In this document: positions 31,049 through 64,000 of the stretch, in pieces
Numbering within the stretch: position 1 is the first letter of the stretch
Layout of the letters: the number at the start of each line of letters is the position of its first letter
NCBI GenBank assembly: GCA_020536535.1
Contig: JAHLWZ010000187.1
Coordinates: 62,001-126,000, forward strand
DNA from: Pelomyxa schiedti
Lineage: Eukaryota > Protista > Evosea
Direction of reading: 5' to 3'
Length of the DNA: 64,000 nucleotides
Position numbers and translations under genes: made by a program
The notes under the pieces: generated by a model
The model's database searches: none
Told to the model about the DNA's origin: nothing
The model's input: the letters and a program-made list of their open reading frames with translations, nothing else

Positions 31049-32690
31049 ATGTCATCTACTGTCGAGGCTAAGACCTTCAACAACAAGACCGACTCCAGGC
31101 TCAACGCAATACTTTACATTCTGTTTCGCCGCGGAAGCTTCGTAGACGCGATAACGCTGACACCACATCACTGTGTTACTGGAAACGCCTCTTGTGCTAT
31201 GTGCACCTTTAAGGTTTCACTGTTTTTTTTTCCCGAGTGTTTTCTTATAACGTACTCAGGGTCTGATAAACGAGTATAAATTCTCAGAGGAAACTGTTCT
31301 GAATGCAAACAACCTTCAGTTGTCGCTCGATGTTGTGGATCCTAATGTATGTATCCCCTAAATCATTCTGTTCTTTGTTGACTAATATACATTCCAGGCT
31401 CATCCCCAAATACTCTTGTGGTCTCTTATATCGAAACTTCACAACTGCAACCTGCGGGATTTGGATTGTGCACGTGCTCCTACATTTCAATATTTTGGTC
31501 TCTTGGTGAAATCTACATGTTCGTACTGTGGAGACTTCGAAGACAGACATGAGAACTTCCTCACAATGGAGGCCACAGTAACAAGGTAGTCCCTCTTCCT
31601 TTTTCGCCCAAAGTAACTTCAATCAGGTGCATGAGTGAACCCGTTTCTATTAATACGCACCTCAGTGAATACTTGGGCAAATTAGGCTGCAAGGTTTGAC
31701 CTTACACCACTCAACCTTTTTGTAAGACTTGTAGAAGTGTTCAAGACAAGGAGGACTGCAACTTGCTTTTACTCACCTCCCACGTTACCTTGCAGTAGAA
31801 GTGTTCTACCCATCACCTTGGTCGACTCCGGGTACGTTCCTCATTTACCATCTAGTATTCTCATCCTGTTTGTAGATGCCCTAATAGACCGTTTGGCTGA
31901 CTCACTGAACTTGGGATCGGAGTGCTTTAAGCTCATCGGTGTGATATGCAGGAATTCAAGTAACACCGTCAGTTTTGTTTTGCGACCTGGAGGCTGGCGC
32001 ATGCAACGTGATGCAAAAGAGATCATGGTTTGTCTTCATCCCCTATTACCAAATTCTTACAGCGAAATCCAGTTATGTACACTTGATTGTGTGATCTCTT
32101 TTATGAAAAGTCAGCATTACTCTCCAGAGATCCTTTTTTTTGAAAGGACACCTTTCCTGCCCAGTGTTACTCGCTCTGCCCTTCAACGCCGACTTCCTCC
32201 AGCATGTACCACAGTGGCAACACCCCAATTTAAGCAAGAACCTACCGCGTACAGTGCTGGCATACTGGACACGCAAAGACCTGTTGAAGCTGTGAGTGCA
32301 GAGCCTTTGAGAATACCTACAGCAGGCCTCGAACAGCATACCGAGTGTACTACGCCTTCTCAGCAGTTCACTGAACTTGTAGAACCACCTCTGGCCAGAG
32401 CACATACTGTAGCTATTACTCGACGAACACCGGGCCCTATTCGCAGAAGTACTTGTGGCCGAGAACAAGTGGCTCGTGACCACTTTGGTTCCAATGGTCT
32501 AACCTCGTCGTCTACACATAGACAGGTGGGAGCAGTTAGGTTTTGTGAGGATCGAAGGGCTCCTCGGGCCTTGTGCATAGGACGTAGATACGCCGACCTT
32601 GTTGGGGGTGCGTGTGTATTAGCTCTTCTGGTCCTTATGTTGCATCTTATCGTGGGTGCTGGGCGGGATATGATAGGCAGATTGTGGTAG
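31049..32690 (+). CDS. USP (peptidase C19)-fold pseudo-deubiquitinase with C-terminal transmembrane anchor
   Basis: Spliced model: FNNKTDSRLNAILYIL (Cys box), CSYCGDFEDRHENF, LGCK|KCSR...HLPRYLAVE, FKLIGVICRNSSNTVSFV...WRMQRD (His box), PEILFFER. Terminal hydrophobic LVGGACVLALLVLMLHLIVGAG. An in-frame upstream ATG at 30938 is an alternative start. Confidence 0.6.
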
Positions 32691-33048
32691 TTAGGAAAAC
32701 AACCAACAACGAAACCAACAACCAACCAACCAACAACCAACAACCACAAAACAAAAACCTCCAACAAACAAAACCGACACCAACGCAAACACGAAGAAAC
32801 GGGAACTAAACAAAACCATTTTCTTGTCCTGTACCATGTCTTTTTTTTCCATCCTCTTTCTTCCCCTCTCGAAGGGGAAAACAAAAACTTCAAAAAGGAA
32901 CGATCATCAGACAGATTTCGGTGTCGTGGTTACGAGACGCACATCAACAACCACCAAAGCCGAATAAAACAAGTCGCGAAGGGGCGTCACAACAACATCC
33001 CGTTCTCCTCTTTCTTGTAGTGAAGCCCCTCCAGTCTAGCCGTAGTGA

Positions 33049-35992
33049 ATGAAGGTGATAGAAGTGATAGACGCCACGTCCGGCATGCCCGTGTACAGCG
33101 AGTCGGGCATGTTCATGGGCCAGCAGCTCAACGCCACCCAAATGACCCTGGCCTCCAACCTCTCCGAGTCCCTCGCTTACATCTCCGCCCATAACGCCCC
33201 GCCCCCCACGCCCCCGCCCACCCTCGCCACCACCTCCACGACCTCCACGACCTCCACGTCCCTCTCCGCGGCCTCCACCCCCACTCCCTCGCCGTCCTCC
33301 TCTTCCTCCTCCTCGCCGCCGCCCCCTCCCTCGCAGCAGGCCGCCCCGCCGCCCAAGCCCGAGGCGCCGCCGCGGCTCCGGGCCAACTGCGCGGTGCTGT
33401 CCTCCGGGTCCCACAACGCGTTCGCCATCAGCAACGAGGGCGAGACGCCCGAGGAGCTGCGGGCGCAGCTGGCCATGATCCTGGACCTCGCCCGCATGCG
33501 CGGCGGGCCCTCCTTCGGCCCGCAGACAAAGTCGCTGCGCGCCATCGAGCGCCTCATCGTCACGGCGCAGCACCTGTGCGCCACGCAGCAGTCGGCCCTG
33601 CTCATGTGCCTCGAGCACCTCGACGTGGCCCCGAGGTTCCGGCTCAACTCCCAGAAGGCCCTCAAGGCTGCTGTGTGTGACTCCCACGCGAACCTGGAGG
33701 CGCGGTTCGCTATGGTCTGCGCGGATTCTAGGGTCGTGGCTTTGTGGTCTCAGTCGGCTCAGTCGGGGATTCCGCCGCAGGAACAGTTCATGCTTTGTGT
33801 GCACGCTCACTCCCTGTTTGAGTACTCGAAAATCCCGCAGAAGCATCATGGCAGGGACCCCTTTGCGTCGATGTCTTCTCCGCCTCCCCCGCCTCCTACT
33901 CCTCAGACTCTTTCTCAGTCACTTGGCCAGGTTTCTGCTTCTACTGCCGCTGCTGCTCCTGCTGTTGTTCCTGCTCAGCCGGCTGCTCCTCCTACTAGCC
34001 TGAGTCAATCTGTTACTCCGGTTTTTGAGTCCCCAGTGTGTCAAACAAATGTCATTCCAAGACCTTCAACACCTCCAACTCCAGTAAGTGACATATCACA
34101 ATCTGCTCCTTCTACCCCACTGTGGGCCTCAGATATACCTTCACGCCTCCCAGCCACTGCAACATCACCTACAATAGACTCTACTGAGAAACACGACGTT
34201 CCTAGCAATTCTGTTCCTGTTCCTAGTGAGTCCGTTTCTGGCGCTAATGTTTCTGGTGATTCTATTCCTACAATCAAAGAGGTGGTAGCCTCCACTGAGA
34301 CCACAGCACCCTCCACCGAAACCACAGCACCCTCCACTGAGACCACAGCACCCCCCACTGAGACCACATCCTCCACAACTATTTCCTCCAATACAAGTGA
34401 GGTACCGAAAAAAGATGATCCAAAACCAGTTGAATCGAGTGAACCTGGGGCAACAGATCAGCCTAAAGATGGTGCAGAGGAAGCTAACAGCGGCGCCGAG
34501 GATGGTGAAGAAAGTATGGTTGTAGTTGTGGAAGATGAGGGTGGTGCTACAAGTTCAATTTCCCCCTCTGGACCAGAAAGTGATGCCCCTGGTCGTCCTG
34601 ACACACCCCTCTTGTCTACCAGTCCTCCTCCTGGTGATACCTCTCCAGGCACTACCCCACCAATCGCACCACCGACACCATCGCCAGATATTCCCAAGGC
34701 TGTGGATACTAGTAAGCAACGACTGTCTTCACCCGGCCTTTTGACATCAAGTGCCAGCACTCAAGCCTTACGACCTGTTGCTTCTGCAACATCTCGCTCC
34801 CTCTCAAATATTGCACAATCTCCTGGTGTCCTCCTACCTTCAACTTCGGCTCCAATAACTCCCATGCGATCCTCTGGTACACCACTGAAGCCACATTCTT
34901 CCTTAAGATCCAGCCCTCTACGAACTACTGTGAGGGGTGAATATACACTGCTTTATCTTACTCCACATGGCTACACACACACGCTTTCCAGTAGCTCAGG
35001 GGCAGTTGACCCTGCACTACACATTAAACCGCACTGGGTCTATACAGTTCAGATTTTCCCCAGCTTTTATCTCATCGTTGTCATGAGAGGTCAGAACAAA
35101 CAGCCAGACCAAATTAAAGACATGGTTGCTAGGCTTAGAAGAAGCCTCACAGATTTCGCCGGTATGTATTCCACAAAACATTTATTCCTTACACCCATTC
35201 CTCCCAAAACTATTTGTTTACTTCCGCATTTGCATTCACACATCCATATTCTCATTCAAATTTGAATCCTTTTTATTGTCATATCATCTAATACCAGACC
35301 CAGACTTCTTCCTGGCAACACACCGGCCTGTTCTGCCATATATATCGTCATTCCCAGGACTAGTCCACTTCATGTTCGCGGAGCGCGTGCGCGGGGTCTG
35401 CGTGACGCCGCCGATATCCTCGCTGTACGGGCGGCAGTACAAGCACGACGCGGCGGCGGACGAGCAGTTCACCCAGCACATGCGCCACGTGCTGTGGTCG
35501 CACGTGTACCGCACCAGGAGGTTCCTGACCGCCGGGTACCCCTGCGCCATACTGAGGACAAACCAGTACCACTACAGCTACCGCCTGTGGCTCGACGACG
35601 ACGGCATCGAGGTGCCCTGGGACACCCCCTGGGTGCTCGTGATGCAGAAGCGCTGGATAGACAGCAAGAACGCCGCCGCGGCAGCGGCTGCGGCTGCGGC
35701 CGCGAGTGGAGCGGCTTCTGGGGGTGGGGGAGGGGCCAGGGGGTCTGGCGGAGGGGGACCTGGGGGAGCGAGTGGTGGGGCGGAGGAGCAGATGTTCATT
35801 GCGGAGGGGCCCAGGCCGGTTACGCCAGAGTGGTATGTGGAGCTTATTGAGACGATAACGGCGCATTATGGGAGGAGGCCACAGCGGTGCTATGAGCTAT
35901 ATTCGGTGTATATCCCGTGTTTACCAGCTTCGGTTGTGGCGAGGAATGACAGGGCTCTGGCAGCTTCACTGATAGCACACATATCAAATTGA
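33049..35992 (+). CDS. HPS1: Hermansky-Pudlak syndrome 1-like protein (BLOC-3 subunit, longin domains)
   Basis: C-terminal FPGLVHFMFAERVRG, YSYRLWL and RCYELYSVY match HPS1 motifs as I recall them (FPGLVHFIYVDR, RCYELL). N-terminal longin-like segments. One intron ~35162-35297. Long Pro/Ser/Thr insert. Confidence 0.8.
34291..34368 (+). repeat. 21-nt coding tandem repeat (STETTAP x3 + PTETT) in HPS1
   Basis: TCCACTGAGACCACAGCACCC-like unit repeated about 3.7 times. Confidence 0.9.
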
Positions 35993-36311
35993 AAACAAGA
36001 GCCTCTAGACCTTTTTCTTTTTTTTTTCTTTTTTTTTTTTGGAAAACTCACCAGCGGTTGGCATTGCGGCGCTCTTCACAGGAGCGACACATTTCGGGAA
36101 TTAATCCTGACCTGCTCTCATACCGTCCTTCAATGCCGGCGTAGCAATATTTGCACTACGACTGATCAGTAAATATCCTTCCAACGAATTGGCTTACATT
36201 GGATTTTACCGTGGAGTTCTTGTGGGTGCCACAATATTTAAAAGACTGTCTTGAAAATGTAGTATCCTGAAAGGTCGCCTGAATAAAAAGTAAACAAACT
36301 TTCCTAAAAGG

Positions 36312-39300
36312 CTATAACTGACACACCTCGTCGAAGTTTGTACTCTGATCCGCTTCGGTGGTGTTCAGATTACACTGAGAGACAATCGCCCGTCTAAAGT
36401 CAGTGTTCTGCAACTTGGCCCCCTCAAAACTAACATGTCTCAGTTTTGCATTGCAAAAAGAAGACCGCCACAGGGTGCTGTTGTTAAAATAAACATCGGT
36501 TAGTGTCGCCCCTGTGAAATTGCAGTCACTGAGGTCAGCGCCCGTGAAATTTGTGTATTGCAGATCTACGTTCTCCATGTTCACACCCCTCAGAATGGCA
36601 AAGGACAGTCGAGCTGGTCCAGAACCTGAAATTGTCGCTTTATCGAGGTGCGCTCGTTCCAAGTTCACATTGTACCATGTACAGTTAGAAAAACTGACAC
36701 CTTCTAGGTGACCTTCCTGAAGATCTACGTTTTCTAAGCGTACTCCATGGAATCTTGCTCCCTTCAGCTGTACGAGTCGGATGTTGTGGAGATGACCACC
36801 TGTCAAGGTAGCTTCCTCAAGAATTGCCTATTAGGCAGATAAGTCCTTGCGAGATAGTTCACACACAAACCATGTCCAGGTTGGCCCCAATGAGTCCATC
36901 TCCAGTAAGGGAAGTCTTTGAGAGATCACAGCCAGTCAACTGTGCTTTCTGAAGCTGGGCATTGTCGAGCTGGGCACCCTTCAGGCGAGTTGTACGGAGG
37001 TCAACTTCAGATAATAAAGCTCCAGTAAGGCAGCAACCTTCAAGATTCACATTTATAAGTGTTGAACCTTTGTCAAATTGTGCCCCCGCGAGATTTGAAC
37101 CATGTAGGTCCACTGATTCAAGACGTGTTTGGCACAAGTTTGCACCCTCAAGTACCGTGGGCCTTCGTTGACTTTGCCCAACCAATAAAGCACGGGTAAG
37201 GGTGGCACCAGAAAAATTGACTTGATGAAAATCGACACCAATCAAGTTAGCTTCTGTGAGATTGGCCCCACTAAAATTAGCAGGACATATTGGGTCCTTT
37301 GTAGGACTTTTTCTCCCCTGACAATCTATTTCTGGTGATGCACATGCATAAGATAAATCCACTTTGGACATGTTGGCACCAGAGAAGTCTACTTTATGTA
37401 GTGTGCTGCCTGAGAAATTCTTTTGTGTGAGGTCCTTGCCCACCCAGGTGATTTCTTCCTGTTTGACCCCTACAAGTGGGCATTCAACCATTTTCGTCAG
37501 AAGGTCATTCCCTTTGATTACAGCTCCTGCAAGATTACACTGGTGTAGCTTCGTTTTTTTAGAGAGAATTGTATCTGACATCACCACTGACTGCAGGTTT
37601 GTATGTGCCATTTCAGTCCCAGATAAGTCTGCACCGGTCATATCTGCTCCTGATAAGTCACATTCCAGGAAAGCGGAATGTGACATATTTGCATGGGAAA
37701 AGTTGGCTGACTTTAAAGAGCATTTCCTGAAAGCTACGTGAGTACAATCATCCTCAAAGACCACGGGATCCAGGTCACATTGTTCAAAAGAAGAGTGGAA
37801 CATCGAGCAACTGGACAGCTTCGTAATATGAAATCTTTTTACCAACGTAAATGAAATGTCACTGTGATCAAATATTAGCGTTGAGATGGGTTTTTGGGGT
37901 GAGGACCAACCCCACTGGGAAGGCCTTTCAGGTGCTTGCAAGAGTAATCCGCGAAGACAAGATGAAGAAAATGAGCAATCTAAAGTGGATTGAAAAGTGG
38001 TGCACAGGAAGTCACATTTGAAAAATTTGCTCCCGTCAATATTAAGTCCTGAGCATTCATTGAGGTCGCTTTCCTCCACTGTACAATCATTAATGAGAAA
38101 CTTCTCAATGTGATTGCTTTGAAACTTGGTTCCTGTGACGGAACATGATTTCAGTAATAAAGTAGCTTGTGCAGGAAGCGAAGAAAAGTCAACATTTTTC
38201 ATTACACAGTTGGAAAAAGACAGTGCTGTTGGTACCCTTTCAATGAGAAGGGCTTCTATGTTGCACCCAGTGAAGGAACAGTTCTGTAAGGTGCAATAAA
38301 CGTCTTTTAACTGTACATTGGTGAAAGAGCAGTTTTGGAAGGTCCAATAGCGGTCTTTGAACTGTATATCAGAAAATTGTGAATCCCTGAATTCTGAGGA
38401 CTTGCAAGCAATAGTCTCAAACCCTCTTACAGCCGCCATGGTAACTCCAGTCCAAGTGATACCTGATACAGTTGATAAAACAAACCACTATAATGCAAGA
38501 GACCTGCTGCTTGATTGTCTGGGAAATGACAGGAAGTAAAGTCAGCTCCTGTGAAGTCAGCGTTATCAAACACACACGATATGGCAGGCATCACTGAAAA
38601 AATTGTTCCCCTAAATTTGCAGGATGTGAAGTTTGTATGCATCATGACCAGGCCTGTCCAGTTCAGAAGCATTGTGAAATCGGCTTGAACGGAATTGAAA
38701 TTGACGTGAGCCACATTATTTCCTTTGACCTTAGTCAGAACAGTGCCGCCAATAAATTGCGACGAAGTGAAATCAACGCCAGTTACCATACTCTCTGAGA
38801 AGCACGTTTCATTGAAGATGCAAGCACGCATCTGTGCTTTGCTGAGATCTGCCTGCGTGAAATCGGCAGCCTGGAATTTTGAGGAGCTGAAGTTGACGCC
38901 TGAGGCAGCAACTCCAAGGAAGCAAACTCGATCAAATTCACATTCAGACAAGATGCACCCCGAGAGGTCCAATCGTGTCAAATCAACGGCAGAAAATTTC
39001 GCTCCAGAAAAATCAACACCTCTCACTTCAGCCTCAGTGAAACACCCTCTATTTATTTGGCAACTTCTCATAGTAACGCCTTTTAGGTCTGCTCTACTCA
39101 AATCACAGTCTGTGATTGGATGAGTGAAATCACTTAAATTGTACTACCTACCACTGAAAGACGTTCCTGTGAATACGGTACTGTGGAATTTAAAGTGTGT
39201 CATATCTGTTTGAAAACTGGATTGGGAAAACTGGCAGGAGGTGATTGTAAAAAGTTCTTGCACATGGCATGCTTCAAAAGAGGAGGTAGTAATGGAAGAG

Positions 39301-51600: not shown

Positions 51601-53883
51601 AAAATCTGCAGATAGCAGCCAATCTGGATCTCAGAAGCACCACCGTCATTTGCATAGAACAAGTGCCACGTCAGAGACTGCAGCATCTCCTGCTAACCCC
51701 GCCGCGGTTGGTGTACCTGAAAGAAGCAAAGTAAGTCTCCCCTGTTAATTTCCTGAAAAAAACCTTCCACAGAGTGGTACACTTGGTAATATTCGACCGA
51801 GGTCCACAAGTTTAGCAGAAAGATTTGCTAGCAAGCTTCCTGTATTTGCTGGGAAAGGCCCTCACCACGGCGCCGTACCGCCAGTAGCTACCGGCACCTC
51901 ACTACCTCCCCCAGCGGCTCCGATTCAACGAACAAAGACACCCCCAGTTCCTGGAGCACTTCCTACCCAGCTTCTCACCCCAAACCAAACATCGCACCAT
52001 TCATCTACATCCGACTCTTCACAGCACATGGCTCATCTAACACCACCACAATCACCTAACCTTTTTCCACAGCAAATGGGGTTGCGTGCCCCTCTAGGTA
52101 GTCATCAACCATCAAACACCACCATTTCTTCAGGGGCTCAATCCTTCATTCCGTGGCCTGACCCATCTTTGGTGTTTGGTCCCAGGTTCATCATGACTTA
52201 CACAACAAATCCACTTAACCATGAGATTACGGCACACACACTTGGGCCTTATTCTCTTGGTTTCCACATTCCACCTCCCACCCCTACCCTAACACCAGGC
52301 AGCGCCATCTCTCCAACAAATCTGCTACTAAAGCGAAATAGTGCATCTTTTACACATACTACTCCCTCTTCTTCACCATCGACATCTACTCCCCCACAAT
52401 CACCTCAGCCCTTTATAAACGACGAGACCTTTAACCCCTTTGGCACACCATCAACTCCTACAAACACTCGTGCTTCAGAGGTTCCTCCCTCCAATCCTGC
52501 TAAGGTTGACGACCTTTTCGGCACTTCTTTTGCGTTTCCTCCAGCTCGGAATAGCGAAGAACAGTCATTTCCAGCACACACAGACCAATTTGGCTTTTCC
52601 TCCTCGGATAGTTTATTTGGAAATTCTTCTTTCACCTCCGAAAGTAGCACACTTGGCAACAGTCAGGTGTTAAATACTTCCTTGGATCTTACGCAATCAG
52701 GAGCAGAGGAAAAGAAAGAAGACACAACACCCAAGCCCACAGAAAATCTGTTTTCATCATCAATAGATTTTGGAGCTTTCCCGGTTTCATTTGACGCACC
52801 CACCACAACTACCAGTACAACTGAGCCAGATAAAAAAGTTACTTCACAGGAAGAGGCTGTCTTGGCAGGTGACATTCTTCCTCCACCATTAGAAGATATG
52901 CCACCTTCACCAAAATCTGTGGAGAGCCCAGTTGTACAACAAACAGCGCCAGCTATAAATACCCAAATAACACAAAGCGCAGATTTGCCAACTCAACTTA
53001 CAACAGCAGAAACCCTAGTAGATTCCCAACTGGATTTCCAAGTTCCACCCCCACCACAACCAACTTCAGAAACCCTCTCTGAAACGCCAGCAACTACACA
53101 ATCTTCGGCATCTCTCTTTCCATCAAGTTCTGATAACTGGATTTCTTTCAGTCAACCAGACATCCCCTCTTTCACGAATCCGACTCTCACATCTTCCACT
53201 TCAGGCAATCTTGGCAATACAACATCTTTCTTCAGTAGCTCCAGTGACAACTTCTTCGATTCAACACTCACTTCACCTCTTCCCGATGCACCTCAAGCTC
53301 CTTCAGATACCGGGAAATTTTCGTCATTCAATCGTGCGGTTTCATTTCCTGCCACTTCAGCATTCTCTCCTTTCAACTCCTCCGAATTTAACCCGTTTGG
53401 AACGGATTCAGACAATACTGAAAATCGGCCCAAAGAAACGCCGGAATCATCCTCGCCCTTACCTACCTACACGTCCTCCAACAATGAAACAGAAGACAAA
53501 AAGCACAGGACCCACCACAATTATAAACACCGGTCTGAGGCCTTTGGTAACAAAAGCTACTCATTCACGGTATGTTCCCAATTACCACTCAAACCCCAAA
53601 ACCTTCCCCTCTCCACCAAACCAACAAACAAAGCAACCCTCAACACTAGACAAATACAAATACATAAAAAAACCTAACAACAACCAACAAAAAAACAAAA
53701 AACAAACAGAGCACTGGGTCATCATCATCACCAACATCAGCTACGCCCACATCATTAGGCACATCAGGACTCGCACAGGGGGGGACACCAGACACACCCC
53801 CTCCTAGTTCATCACCACCTCCCGGCCATCACCACATTCACCACCGCCATCACAGTTCCACCTCAAAGAAGCAGCAGTCATGA
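48681..53883 (+). CDS. EH-domain endocytic scaffold (Eps15/Ede1-like): 2 EH + coiled coil + Pro/Ser/NPF-rich tail
   Basis: LFKFADADGDGIL...SKLPQEVLAR|VWE; WAISPENTMKYGAIF...IADNDHDTALSRAEFIVGMHL; heptads at 50730-51530; FNPFG motifs; stop TGA 53881-53883. Confidence 0.8.
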
Positions 53884-57472: not shown

Positions 57473-60400
57473 ATGGGTAGATAAGCCAACGAACCACTAC
57501 CAACACTTTTTTTCCCGCCCCCACACCAAACTGGTTGGTGGCAACAATAACTTTTTTTTCCCCCCCCACAGCTGGCTTCATTTCGCACACCACAACAAGT
57601 GGTTGTCCAACTGATCCCAGCAGTTCCACCGCCCCCACGACCTCGAGTTCCAACCGCTCTGCCCTTTCGAACCGGTCAGGAACACGCCACAGGAAAGCAC
57701 CCATTGATGCAGTTGCAATTCCCACTTGCGCCGTGGAGCAGCGACAGGACTGGCTCCGGTGTGAGAGCCGGGTGAATATCCACCTCGTACTGGCATTTGA
57801 ACTGCTTGGTTTCAAGGCAGTTCCCATCGACGGCACTTTCGAGAACAATGAGCTGGCCCTCTCGGTGCTGTCTCAGATGTGCTCTGAGGAAGACAAGAGC
57901 AATGGGGTTGAGGATGCAAGCCACTGCCGGGATTTGGCTCCACCACTGGACAAAGTGGAAGCAAAAGGGGTAGCGACGAACCGGCCCTCCCCACTTGCAC
58001 TTTTGACCATTTCCCGAACTAGTGCAAGATTGAAATGCTATGGTATATCTCTCAATAAGGTGTTTCATCATATTGGGAAAGCTTTTAAACCAGATGAACA
58101 GAGCACTGTGATGAATTTCCAGAAAAGTGTGAGTCACATACTGGAGGTTTTTGACACAAATGTCTCCCTTGAGGCCAGCATTGCCTTTTCACCCCTTGAT
58201 ATTCAGTTGGACCTATTTCAGGTCACATTTGGCGATTGTGTAAAACTCGGGGTAGTTAGCAAGCCGGAATCAAAAATAGACAGTGAAGTGGGGAACAAGG
58301 GAAACACAACACATACCCTTGAAGCTGAATTAAAACTCACTATGGGCTCAGTTATGGGCTTTATAAGGAACATCCTTCTTGATCAGCCATCAATTGCTGA
58401 CACCTTGGAGGTGATAACACAGACAAAATTCTTGACACTGACGGAGACATCTCTTTTCCACATTATTATCAAACTTGATCTAGGTGGAGGGAAGGGAATG
58501 GTGATGGAGCACTTCTCTCTCTTTGTGGGACCCATCACTCTCCTTGGGGTACCACTGAACATTACAACTAACTTACCCACGTCGAGTGATCAAGTCAACC
58601 CCAGAAGATCGCTCTCCTTGGCACTACAAAAGCCAATACTTCCACTTGGAGAAGAGACTACCTTGCTCTCCATTGTCTCGAAACTTCATGCACTTCCCCC
58701 TAAGATCCAGGATGTACTGCAGAAATTCGTGCTTAAAGACTACAAGTTATTGCTATCACTGCCAGTGGATTCTGGGGGATTGTCAACCCTTCTAGAACTT
58801 TCTTTTGCTTTCTACATTAATGTGTCTCTCCGTTCTCGTAATGCTATCAGCTGCCAGGCTTGCCTGCTGCACAACCCATTGCAGACATGTGTTGTGGTGT
58901 TGTTTGATAACTTGGAGTTATTTACGATCATAAGTGCCATCTTTGGCACTTCCTTCGGTCTACCTTTGCGTCTCTATATATGCCAGTTCCTGCTTCTTCA
59001 TCAATCCACGAGCGCAACAGTACCTTGTTCAACACCAGAGTCTTTTGTCACCTCATTTTTTTCTGAAAATGAAGAGAGGCAATTCCAAAATATGTCTGGC
59101 CAGCAGCTGGCACTTAAACAGGAGGAAAGGATTCTTTTACAGAAATCTTGTCAAAAATTGCTTAAGCGGAAGGAAGATACCTTTCTTTGCCTTACCATTT
59201 CTTGTTACCTCACTGGACAACTTTTTGACATGCTGCACCTTGAAGGAACAACTCTTGTGGGAAAGCTTATGATTTTGGACGAATCTCCACAATTGAAGAT
59301 CAGCCTCCCAGAACTTAAACTACCTGGCTTGGATCCTGGCAAAGCCTCTTTGCTGCTGAGTCCTGGGGGAGTTGAAATTAAGACCACTCTGAAGTTTTCC
59401 CATAATCTGAAGTTAGAAGCTTCTCTTAAAGGCAGCATAACCAGTCGTTCAGTGAGAGGTAGGGTCACACTTGATGAGGATGAAAAGGGTGAAAAGCCTG
59501 GTATTCCCCTATCACTATTTATTCCTGGAAGCCTGCCCTTTATCAAAAATCTGGCCGTATATGGACTGCAGGGGGAAGTTGGTGTTTCCTTCCCACCACT
59601 AAATGTATCCATCCTCCTTGGTGGGGGAATTAGGGTGCTTTGGGAAGATGGGCCAAAGCCATTCATGGAGGCAGTAGTCAGAGCCACTGTGCTAGTGTGT
59701 GCACCTCCGGCAATCTCAATAACAACACTTTACGTTGCATGTGCTGACATCACTCTTGGCTCACTTATTCGGATTGTCACTGGGTGGTCCTACAAGGATG
59801 TGCAGCTCCTCGATACTATATTTCCTGTTGTGAAAGAGTTGGCCTTTCTGTGTAAGGTTGATGACAAAGAACTTGAAACAGTACCATCGATGCCAAACAC
59901 AGAGTCGGCAAAACAAAACTCTCTGGTGCATGTAATTCAAATGTTCTCGGAAAGGAAAAAAGGATCGCCACTATTACTGGCACATGAGCAATGCCTTGCA
60001 TTTGTAGCACATCTTTCCTGGCTCGGCCTGGAGGGAAAAGTGGTTTTCTTTTCTAAGGTGGGGAGTACGGGTGCTGCCCTTCTTTTCCAGCTTATGATTG
60101 AAAACTGGGAATGTAAAGTAGGCTCCATTGTTCTCTTCAAACTTGGACATGGATCTTCAGGAAAGGGTCTAGATATAAAATTGCTGTTAGACACAAAATC
60201 CAGACAAGCTTCTTTCGACCTTGAGGCTTATATTGAGGTCCTCCCTGGAATTCTAGGATTTACAATTCAAGCTGAAGTTCATTTTGGAAATGGTGGGCGA
60301 CCTGGCAGTGTCACTTCCTCAGGGAAAAAGCAAGACAACGGCTTGCATTTGGAGATTGCTGTTAAAATATCTTTCTCAAGAAGGGAAAATTGTGAAGATA

Positions 60401-63400
60401 ATGACATGTCACCAGGAAACCCCAGTGGTCTAGTACTGGAGGGTACCTTGCAAGTCACTTGGAGAAAAATTGTACCAGATGTGCGTGCTGCTATTCGAAT
60501 GTCCAGTAGAGATGGAGTGATATCTGCCCTTGTAGATGGACTGAAGTACTGCCTCACCAACTTTTTTAATGTGTGCAAAGGGGCACTACAACGAGCTGAA
60601 GACGCAGTCTCAAAGTATGTGCCAAGATTTGTTCAGGGCCTTCTGAAAGGTGTTCTTTATGTAGCAAAGGCTGTTGTCAACGTAGTTGAGCAAGGTTTTG
60701 TTGCAGCCATTCTTAAACTTCTTAATGCCTGTGCGAAAGTATTGGATGTAAAATCACTGGAAGTATGTGGTGAAGTTTGTGGGGATGACAAATCAGTAGT
60801 CGTGATGGTTAAGTTTGAACTCATTGTTTTTGGGCATGTACTTCAAGGCTCAATTCAAGTGAACTTGAAAACTCTGATAATTGATCTTTGCAAAAAGGTC
60901 GGAGGATAAGCTTCCCTTGTTTACCTTCTCACTTGAGTACAGGTACTTCAAAATATAGTTTTATGGTGGAAGGACAAAAATGCTTCCGAGCCCGTTGAGA
61001 AGTCAGAAGTACCTGATGACGATTGGTACAGAAAGGAATGCTTCTTTAGTGACGAGGATGAAGAACTTAATGTCACGAGTACAACTTGTGAAGATGCAGC
61101 GTACAAAACTGTAGCCTTGCCTCCTTGTAGTGAGTATATCGGCAGTCCCGATGACGATGAGTCAACGATACAGTTGAACAGCCTTATCAATGATGTATCT
61201 CGTAAAGTTGATCTATCTAGTAGCATGCCCCCAGAGGATGCCCTTGATCTCACAACTGCAAGTCTGAGTGACCCAATGCTCTCCGAGGTACCTTGCATAA
61301 CAAAACCCCCCATCAAGTGCTCCTTATGCAGTGAGTTGGTTCCAACATGCATTTTTAGCAAGCACATGAGGATTTGTCGTCTTACTGAATCACCATGCCT
61401 CAAGTGTGGTGAGAAAGTTAGGCTTGCCAACAAAGAAAGGCACGATACCGTGGATTGCCCCAAAAAGGTTCTCATCCCTAGGCACTGTGAGTACTGTTCA
61501 GAGAAAGTTGCTGATGGCTCAAAGATGCATGAGCACTACAGCCAGTTCTGTGAGGGTGATTGGACTTGCCCCAAGTGTGAAAAGCCAATGCGCCGGAAAG
61601 CTATAGTCATGCACTTCTTAACTTCTGATGTATCTGTGAAGTGTTCAAATGGCGGACCAGATGATATTTGCTCAAAATGCAACTGCTACAAAGAAAGTCC
61701 ACATGATTGTAGTGTAGATAAGTTCTGCCCGTACTGTGAAGAAAATCAAAGCACTACAAACCACATCTGCGGTGCGGCAGAGGAATGTGCTTTTTGCCAT
61801 ATACTATTTCCGCGAGATTTAGGAGAGGATCATAAGGAAAGAGATTGCACGGGTGAAGTGTCATGTTCATACTGTGGAGAGCTCTTGCCGGCATCCAAAG
61901 AGCCTGCTCGGGTGAAAAGAAGCCAGCACTTTGCTGCATGCAAAGATGCTCCTGCTGTGTGCTTCTACTGCACTCAGCTTTTCCACCGCTCAGTAATATC
62001 CAAGCACATGGAAAACTGCAAGGACAGGTTTAAAAAGTGCACAGCAAGAGGGTGTACCAAGAAAATTGAAAGTGAGGTTTACAATTCCGCCTATGACTAT
62101 GGACAGTGCCCTTGTTGCCTGGAACATTTTACCTCCCACTGGGAGCTCAGGGAGCACCTAAAGCATTCGTGTGCAAAATTTTGTTTACAGTGCCGCTGTG
62201 GGGCCAAGTTCTTGCGGACACACATGACTGGACATCTAAAGTCGTGTGCAACATTCGAAGTTTCTTGTGGTGTTTGTAATCTGACCAACTTATCCCTGAG
62301 GGCTCTCTGTAAACACCTTTCCTCAACGTCATGTGCACTTCCCCTTCCGTGCCCGCTTTGCCGGGGTCCAGCTTGCTTTAGTGAACCAGACATTACTTCT
62401 CACCTATGGAAATGTACTGCAGAAACAAAGTGTCCTTTTTGCCCCACCAGCACGTTATTGTGTGACCGGGCTAACCATCTGCAGTTTGAATGCGAGTTGT
62501 TTGAGGTTTTCTGTTTTTTTTGCCAGCGTAGAATGCCTATGAGGAAGCTATATAATCACTTGCACTGCTGTCCATGTATCAAGCGCTATTGTATTTTTGA
62601 CACTTGCACAGCAGCAAGAATGACCCTCACTGAACTTGAAATTCACTTAGACACTAGGTGCCCATACTTTTTTGTCTCCTGCATGGAATGCAATGCACCC
62701 ATTTTGAAGAAGGATGAGGAAGCCCATTTGATTCAACATAGAATCCTCCGGGTTCAAAAACTCCCTCCTGACAGTTTTCTTACATCAACAACTCATGGAA
62801 ATAACCTTCAACGCCTTCTGCCAATTGAAAAGAAATTCCTGATTTCAAAGGGAAAGACAGCAACCAGACGTCAGAACCGTCTACACAAGATTGCTCTGGT
62901 GAATTTCTTATCTGAAGAAATGCTTCAACAAGACGAAGGTATCAATCTTGTTCAGTGTCCCAAGTGTAGTGAAACAATGGGGTACTCCGATTTACCTGTG
63001 CATCTGAGTTGCTATTGCCCCCGCAATCTGGAGAAATGCCCGCGGCAGTGTGGCTACACAGGGCCTGCAAGCAACATAATCCAGCACCTAACTAAACAGT
63101 GCTACCTTTCACCAGGAAGGTGCATCCGTGGAGATAAGTGCACACTGCAGGTGCACTTTCGTGTCCCACCTGAGGAGGCACGTCTATTATATCCAGATGA
63201 ACCAGGTACTGAAATTCACAAACCAGGTATTTTCCAGTATGTTGTGGAGCGCATCATCCCAGAAAATTCCAGGCGCCTTTCAGGTATTGATCCCGAGGAG
63301 GCACTGTACACGACACTGTGTTCCAGGTCGGTGGAGAATGGAGCCCCTTCGTGTATTCATAAGCGCGACGAAACAAGGCATGCTATATTCTGCTTCAATG

Positions 63401-64000
63401 GAATCCAGGAGTGCATATTTTGTCATTGCCCGACCAGTGATTTGTCCCAACATATTCTTGATTGTACTGAGGCCCGCCGGCCAATCGAGTGCGATTTCTG
63501 CTCGGTCAGAGTCCCTGTCGTTGAAATGCCTGAGCACTGGCTATACAGTTGTGGGGGAAAAAACTTCCTAGTCACCTGTCAGGATTGTGGTGCCCGAGTG
63601 CCGTTTCGTTCGTTAGAGGCTCACCATCTTTGCTCTTGTCCTAAATCTAGCTTACAGTGTCACTTGTGCGGGAAGCACTTCAATACAGAAAAGTACCCCA
63701 GGCACATGCTGAAGAAGTGTAACGGATCCCTTTTCACTGTGAAATGTGGGTTGTGCTCGCAGTGCTGTACCACAGGCGAGCTGCTGAATGGAACTCATTA
63801 TGCCACCAAGTGCTCAAACTGCAGTTGGAGGTGCCCCCTTGGTGCTGCGGATGAAATAGAAACAAATGCATGCCGCAAGGAAGTACCACTTTGCAAACTC
63901 GAGAAGCACTTGATCCCTGACATAGGGGGTGACCTCTGCAAATCCTGTAAATTGCCTTGCCCCAAGTATCCAGCATGCAAAGCAATGGTATTGAGAAGGG
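57473..64000 (+). CDS. >2100-aa protein: ~1100-aa beta-rich N-terminal region + ~25 tandem TRAF-type (CxxC..H..C) zinc fingers; 3' truncated by the window
   Basis: ATG G|intron 57477-57571|exon to 60897|45-nt intron 60898-60942|exon 60943-64000. I read the last exon codon by codon and found no stop (1019 codons). Confidence 0.8.

Follow-up and report, generated by a model that had tools for sequence, protein, structure and literature searches.

Layout of the locus

The window analysed here comprises 64,000 nucleotides (nt) of the genome of the anaerobic amoeba Pelomyxa schiedti (contig JAHLWZ010000187.1, here C187, positions 62,001-126,000); the contig sequence past the end of the window was also read. 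Close to this end, on the forward strand, lies a gene for a long array of TRAF-type zinc fingers that is preceded by a large domain rich in beta-sheet. Most likely, window positions 57676-64000 and 686 further bases of the contig constitute one two-exon gene, encoding a cytosolic protein of ~2321 residues (1074 + 1247 amino acids, aa). Taken as a whole, the observations are best explained, with a probability of about 0.7, by a single gene which carries a TRAF/CEP104-type finger array, belongs to an old and uncharacterised family and would act as an interaction scaffold.

Exon 1 (57676-60897, + strand) encodes the 1074-aa beta-sheet-rich N-terminal domain (N-domain) and sits within an open frame of 1124 codons (57535-60909), whereby Met 57676 is also the start of the public gene model. 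Its C-terminal end consists of a helical hairpin of ~70 aa and a conserved motif (...NLKTLIIDLCKK). A phase-0 GT-AG intron of 45 nt follows (60898-60942, + strand) and contains the TAA at 60907-60909, the sole in-frame stop between the two open frames. From 60943 to 64000 frame +1 is free of stop codons over 1019 codons; it runs on for 228 codons past the end of the window and closes with a TGA at the window-equivalent positions 64684-64686, yielding an exon 2 of 1247 codons with a content of 9.9% Cys and 4.7% His. This frame is absent from the list of open reading frames (ORFs), as the preliminary description of the stretch had noted, because ORFs that run off the end of the source are not listed. 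The term "hidden exon" used there applies to that list only, since the gene is annotated in GenBank as a hypothetical protein of 2041 aa (P0001).

The translation of exon 2, on the same strand throughout, opens with an acidic, probably disordered linker (aa 1-125; 60943-61317), and acidic linkers are found at the equivalent place in the family sequences P0002, P0004, P0008 and P0016. Next comes finger block A (aa 126-599; 61318-62739), in which a hidden Markov model (HMM) of the finger unit locates 11 strict and ~5 degenerate C2HC fingers; this block is collinear with that of the paralog Pelo_7632, the ligands being kept. A non-finger spacer of 72 aa (aa 600-671; 62740-62955) with the motif PPDxFLxSTTxGNNLxxLxPxEKK is conserved in the paralogs and in P0004, P0007, P0008, P0015 and P0016. 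It is followed by the two fingers of block B1 (aa 672-720; 62956-63102), assigned by the unit HMM and the alignment of the paralogs, by a conserved non-finger insert of ~100 aa that ends in ...KRDETRHAIFC (aa 721-820; 63103-63402), and by block B2 (aa 821-1088; 63403-64000 and on to the equivalent of 64206), the last three units of which lie beyond the window. Also beyond the window, a linker leads to a Cys-rich C-terminal domain (aa ~1144-1225) and an ...EKGYF tail, so that the protein ends 160 residues past its last finger. The layout and the finger count given in the preliminary description, with a dense block at 61318-62740, a spacer of ~70 aa and further units behind it, agree with these findings, and the finger sequences quoted there are present as written. 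The MATH or kinase domain that it had considered for the C-terminus is not what the extended contig holds; in its place stand the conserved Cys-rich domain and the GYF tail.

On comparative grounds, the 45-nt intron joins exon 1 in frame to the 1247-codon exon, a junction that had already been proposed. In four paralogous genes (C795, C601, C877 and C1219), GT-AG introns of 60, 47, 42 and 43 nt interrupt the sequence right behind the homologous ...[CA]KK codon. The introns of 47 nt (C601) and 43 nt (C1219) shift the frame between the exons and therefore must be spliced out. The public model splices at exactly the same junction, between KK and VLQNIV, and in the transcript-derived protein P0004 of Diplonema ambulator the residues as far as 798 (...NLKSLIMDLCKK) align with the N-domain, those from 799 onwards with exon 2. 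Alternatively, the locus could hold two genes, the first encoding the N-domain and closing with the TAA 60907-60909, the second encoding a finger protein that starts at an internal downstream Met. While a stop codon does separate the open frames and the N-domain's first ~430 aa have stand-alone paralogs of ~550 aa, homology reaches both sides of the junction, a GT-AG intron occupies the same codon in the paralogs and changes the frame in two of them, and the proteins of Diplonema (transcript-derived), Flabellula and Novymonas as well as P0008 hold both parts in one polypeptide. We regard a pair of genes as very improbable. Reading TAA as a sense codon in an alternative genetic code likewise appears unlikely, given that it would concern the sole in-frame stop in 2336 codons and that this stop falls within a paralog-conserved GT-AG intron.

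The public model P0001 splices out four segments, namely ~59257-59298, the true intron, ~61772-61822 and ~62024-62770. Apart from the true intron these removals appear to be wrong, as the residues encoded by 59257-59298, 61772-61822 and 62024-62770 align with the paralogs and with Diplonema. The last of these pieces, 747 nt long, corresponds to ~ten conserved fingers, and the losses of P0001 in block A comprise exon-2 aa ~278-294 and ~362-610. Judged by these alignments, the deposited protein is incorrect and has dropped ~280 residues and ~11 conserved fingers. The models of the sister genes may carry similar errors.

The zinc-finger array and the terminal domains

Exon 2 contains 20 non-overlapping strict units of the form C-x2-C-x9-13-H-x3-5-C. 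In 1000 shuffles of its residues such units numbered 0.64 on average and never more than 4. An HMM built from the strict units adds ~8 degenerate fingers, which brings the total to about 26-28, each of which would bind one zinc via its Cys2-His-Cys ligands.

The fingers belong to the TRAF/CEP104-type C2HC class, based on Pfam scans, a profile search of the PDB and fold comparison, and the TRAF-type identity read earlier from the letters of the sequence is thereby supported. For these analyses exons 1 and 2 were searched and folded separately rather than as the joined product. Pfam scans of exon-2 segments of ~150-200 aa gave 27.9 bits for CEP104_ZnF (PF21039) over aa 824-913 (cut-off 27.4) and 27.2 bits for zf-TRAF (PF02176) over aa 999-1051 (cut-off 27; segment aa 920-1090), while zf_UBZ reached 23.7 bits and stayed under its cut-off of 25.6. 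In the arrays of relatives zf-TRAF scores 91.8 bits (P0008), 61.8 bits (Durusdinium P0032) and, in another, 32 bits. A profile of the family alignment, compared with the PDB, matched CEP104 (4.9e-9), TRAF4 (1.1e-8) and TRAF6 (2.5e-7), with the range of CEP104 and TRAF matches extending to 3e-6. For exon-2 aa 815-1247, AlphaFold 2 (AF2) predicts a series of beta-beta-alpha (hairpin-helix) units with a predicted local distance difference test score (pLDDT) of ~80-88; with a predicted template-modelling score of 0.31 the model does not fix the packing between fingers. Among 48,161 chains compared with VIA, the top four were TRAF4 (Z 5.3 and 5.1), TRAF5/6 (5.0) and FLN29 (4.3), and Foldseek assigned probabilities of 0.99-1.00 to TRAF6, TRAF4 and CEP104.

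The age of the array can be judged from its relatives. Out of the 76 ligand positions in the strict fingers, 72 are kept in C795, 73 in C601, 71 in Diplonema and 69 in P0008, that is 90-96%, at identities of 39%, 35%, 21% and 19%, respectively, over the non-ligand positions. This far stronger conservation of the ligands argues for an old and fixed array under strong purifying selection. Moreover, the fingers can be paired one by one with orthologs in the relatives, and no DNA-level tandem repeat was found in the array by Tandem Repeats Finder, both of which point to a fixed ancient structure and not to a recent repeat expansion. By all these comparisons, the array is an old series of individually conserved fingers which is not unique to this gene.

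The N-domain encoded by exon 1 matched no Pfam family, and a word-based homolog search with it returned no match; in the ESM Atlas it met unnamed bacterial clusters only, at low recognition. Its AF2 model (mean pLDDT 70) consists mostly of long antiparallel strands, with the helical hairpin at aa 949-1018, and the structural matches to it have a template-modelling (TM) score of 0.1-0.2 or a root-mean-square deviation (rmsd) of 13-19 A. The C-terminal ~590 aa of the domain are 30% identical to aa 202-798 of Diplonema P0004 (E 5e-61), and the corresponding module of Flabellula was confirmed by profile comparison. At the other end of the protein, the Cys-rich domain has the family pattern C-x3-C-x2-C-x9-11-C-x4-C-x2-C-x8-10-GC and closes with the EKGYF tail that is common to paralogs and distant relatives. 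Weak RING signals were obtained for this domain (zf-C3HC4_3, E 0.027; ESM Atlas neighbours all RING clusters, 0.79-0.83), and the C3HC4/C3H2C3 cross-brace pattern of RING-type E3 proteins was not found in it. It may represent a RING-like module that has degenerated.

Paralogs, wider family and other features of the window

Six genes of this architecture are present in the Pelomyxa genome (C187, C795, C601, C877, C1219 and C120). The other five are deposited in GenBank as the hypothetical proteins Pelo_10359, Pelo_7632, Pelo_13298, Pelo_16943 and Pelo_1443, whereby Pelo_7632 is the C601 gene (~100% identity). They resemble the gene studied here in N-domain, intron position, finger order, spacers and C-terminal tail, at 30-43% identity. 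Two of them deviate. In Pelo_1443 the N-domain and finger regions lie in one open frame of 1654 codons, with no stop or frame change between them, and Pelo_16943 (P0006, 3157 aa, C1219) has ~6 fingers only, followed by URGCP-like domains including a GTPase. Scans of the latter gave 30.1 bits for PF25496 (cut-off 27) and 45.9 bits for PF25683, below the cut-off of 55. Directly downstream of the gene in the window stands an ORF of 548 codons (window-equivalent 64991-66634, + strand), a stand-alone paralog with 27% identity to the first ~430 residues of the N-domain (E 3e-30); similar ORFs of ~550 aa adjoin the C795 paralog and occur twice on C601.

To delineate the wider family, 1.84 billion representative sequences were searched with HMMER at a threshold of E<=1e-3. 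Only 24 matches were obtained, among them the model of the gene itself and its five Pelomyxa paralogs. The remainder come from Diplonema ambulator, Novymonas esmeraldas, Flabellula baltica, Durusdinium trenchii with its TRAF-type domain proteins, and environmental sequences, with fragment matches in Entosiphon, Peranema and Amoeba proteus; a word search returned the own public model P0001 and Pelo_7632. The same architecture, for which the preliminary description had suggested a search of Amoebozoa proteomes, is present in the Pelomyxa paralogs, Flabellula, Diplonema, Novymonas and Durusdinium. The unusual length of the array that was emphasised there holds against canonical TRAFs; it does not hold within the family, since the Pelomyxa sister genes, Diplonema, Flabellula, Novymonas, Durusdinium and environmental eukaryotes have 17-25 fingers in the same collinear arrangement.

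The alignments of the relatives are collinear through fingers, spacers and C-terminus. In Diplonema (EP01059_P007249; P0004, 2152 aa) one collinear match spans 916 residues, and the proteins of Flabellula (EP01129_P008132, 2118 aa) and of an environmental eukaryote (P0008, 1868 aa) are, like it, collinear over their full length. All three have the acidic linker, the two finger blocks with their spacers, the Cys-rich end and, of the N-domain, the C-terminal half; the ~480 aa with which this domain begins in Pelomyxa are missing from them, their identity is 19-30%, and all are uncharacterised. The Novymonas protein (KAK7197222.1, 3246 aa), annotated as "Lipase (class 3)/TRAF-type zinc finger containing protein", carries ~19 collinear fingers behind a stretch (aa 1714-1869) that matches the end of the N-domain. 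It differs in being longer by ~1500 residues and in having a Lipase_3 domain at its N-terminus; when used as the query of a word search, it returned only itself and no other trypanosomatid ortholog. Two gene models of the dinoflagellate Durusdinium (P0029/P0032, 3654-3992 aa) show fragments of AAA-lid, ankyrin and Fapy-glycosylase domains upstream of the collinear array and may be chimeric.

The Pelomyxa protein shows the full set of family marks, namely an N-domain ending in ...L[CA]K[KSH], the acidic linker, two finger blocks with conserved spacers and a Cys-rich C-terminus with the GYF tail. Going by these alignments, the gene is a member of an old, widely scattered and uncharacterised eukaryotic family of beta-sheet plus TRAF-finger proteins. 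TRAF-type fingers are known chiefly as spacers of 4-5 fingers in animal immune adaptors. Here, an unstudied family of giant proteins has a fixed array of ~26 fingers whose individual members are conserved between Amoebozoa and Euglenozoa, which shows that already early in the evolution of eukaryotes the TRAF-type finger was employed in very long modular scaffolds. Diplonemids and trypanosomatids include species said to be tractable, and these offer possible experimental entry points.

Some further features of the window lie apart from this gene. On the reverse strand, an ORF of 526 aa (36859-38439) encodes pentapeptide repeats (PF00805, E 2.4e-46) with a weak right-handed beta-helix N-terminus. 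An ORF of 549 aa on the forward strand (52028-53677) is of low complexity and rich in Ser, Thr and Pro; it matches no Pfam family, lies in a region with a guanine-cytosine (GC) skew of -0.42 and has repeated NPF and (D/S)LFG-type short motifs, as in endocytic adaptor proteins. Finally, the GC content rises to 0.53-0.57 at 32001-36000, compared with ~0.44 elsewhere, and this rise overlaps an ORF of 738 aa (33049-35265, + strand) with no Pfam match.

Possible function and comparison with known systems

We propose that the fingers form a long multivalent surface which would bind proteins or ubiquitin and not DNA, because the fingers of TRAF6, TRAF4, CEP104 and UBZ proteins bind such partners (PMC5222566). 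The N-terminal sheet domain, in turn, might serve to anchor or target it, a membrane or lipid surface being one possible site. Hints from the context are the fusion to URGCP-like domains including a GTPase in Pelo_16943 and the fusion to a lipase in Novymonas.

Several points weigh against our interpretation. The evidence for the splice 60897/60943 is comparative throughout. Over the whole of exon 2, zf-TRAF scores 23.4 bits and remains under the cut-off of 27, CEP104_ZnF is sub-threshold as well, and where the Pfam cut-offs were reached, this was marginal and on segments only. The Z-scores of VIA are low (~5), owing to the tiny size of finger domains, and the best E-value of Foldseek fell to CTCF, whose C2H2 array binds DNA. 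For the N-domain, Foldseek and VIA gave no convincing match of fold and returned generic beta-sheet, barrel or porin structures only, and in the family alignment the C-terminal domain has neither the conserved His nor the eighth ligand that a canonical RING possesses. A literature search for the family, moreover, found no paper.

The match to CTCF (zinc fingers 3-11), together with the classical beta-beta-alpha fold and the Fapy DNA glycosylase fragment upstream of the array in one Durusdinium model, itself possibly chimeric, could indicate a polydactyl DNA- or RNA-binding domain like the C2H2 arrays instead of a protein or ubiquitin scaffold. We consider this unlikely, as the ligands are C2HC with TRAF-type spacing, linkers of the TGEKP type are absent, sequence profiles rank TRAF4, TRAF6, CEP104 and FLN29 well above C2H2 factors, and the characterised fingers of TRAF, CEP104 and UBZ type bind proteins or ubiquitin (PMC5222566). 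It also appears rather doubtful that the protein is a bridge-like lipid-transfer protein of the VPS13/ATG2/AsmA type, with a groove capped by zinc fingers. The long antiparallel strands of the N-domain, its weak Foldseek matches to the sheets of ApoB100, LptD and lipovitellin, and the class-3 lipase domain at the N-terminus of the Novymonas relative would fit such a protein; however, no Pfam match to the RBG, VPS13 or AsmA families was obtained, no structure of VPS13, ATG2 or AsmA is among the matches, which have TM scores of 0.1-0.2 and rmsd values of 13-19 A, and the single row for TamAB (Z 9.1, rmsd 16.0) stands among matches to outer-membrane barrels of equally high rmsd.

Returning to the interaction scaffold, a more far-reaching and quite speculative version of it would be an ancient signalling platform, in which the amphipathic sheet docks on a membrane or lipid surface, perhaps that of an endosymbiont or phagosome, and the array and the RING-like end assemble ubiquitin-dependent complexes. 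The expansion to six divergent paralogs in an amoeba that is full of prokaryotic symbionts, the URGCP-like/GTPase fusion and the kinetoplastid fusion to a class-3 lipase may hint in this direction. If such a platform existed, protists would have a counterpart of their own to TRAF-based cell-autonomous immunity or to symbiont control.

Compared to known systems, the best matches in sequence profile and structure are the fingers of TRAF4/TRAF6 and FLN29/TRAFD1 (PF02176; PDB 2yuc, 2eod, 3hcs, 5vo0, 2d9k), which share with the present array the spacing C-x2-C-x11-12-H-x3-5-C, the beta-beta-alpha fold and the tandem order. In TRAFs, however, 4-5 fingers are flanked by an N-terminal RING on one side and by a coiled coil plus MATH domain on the other, whereas the Pelomyxa protein has ~26 fingers, a 1074-aa beta-sheet domain in front of them and a different Cys-rich C-terminus; Pfam scans of both exons detected neither a MATH/TRAF-C domain nor an N-terminal RING. 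The protein is not a TRAF. A bona fide E3 adaptor of the TRAF family, made up of RING, TRAF fingers and MATH, could account for the finger type and for the weak C-terminal RING-like signals (zf-C3HC4_3, ESM Atlas). Beyond the missing domains, though, the order would be reversed, the Cys pattern lacks the conserved His and eighth ligand, only 160 residues follow the last finger, and the paralogs, like the Diplonema protein, terminate with this GYF tail, so that this explanation is largely refuted and highly improbable. The array of CEP104 (PF21039; PDB 5lpi), the best profile match in the PDB, likewise consists of tandem C2HC fingers and binds proteins, namely Nek1 and CP110 (PMC5222566). In CEP104 four fingers form one globule beside a TOG domain, and the Pelomyxa protein contains neither a TOG domain nor any other CEP104 feature. 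It therefore shares its finger class with CEP104 and is not a CEP104 ortholog.

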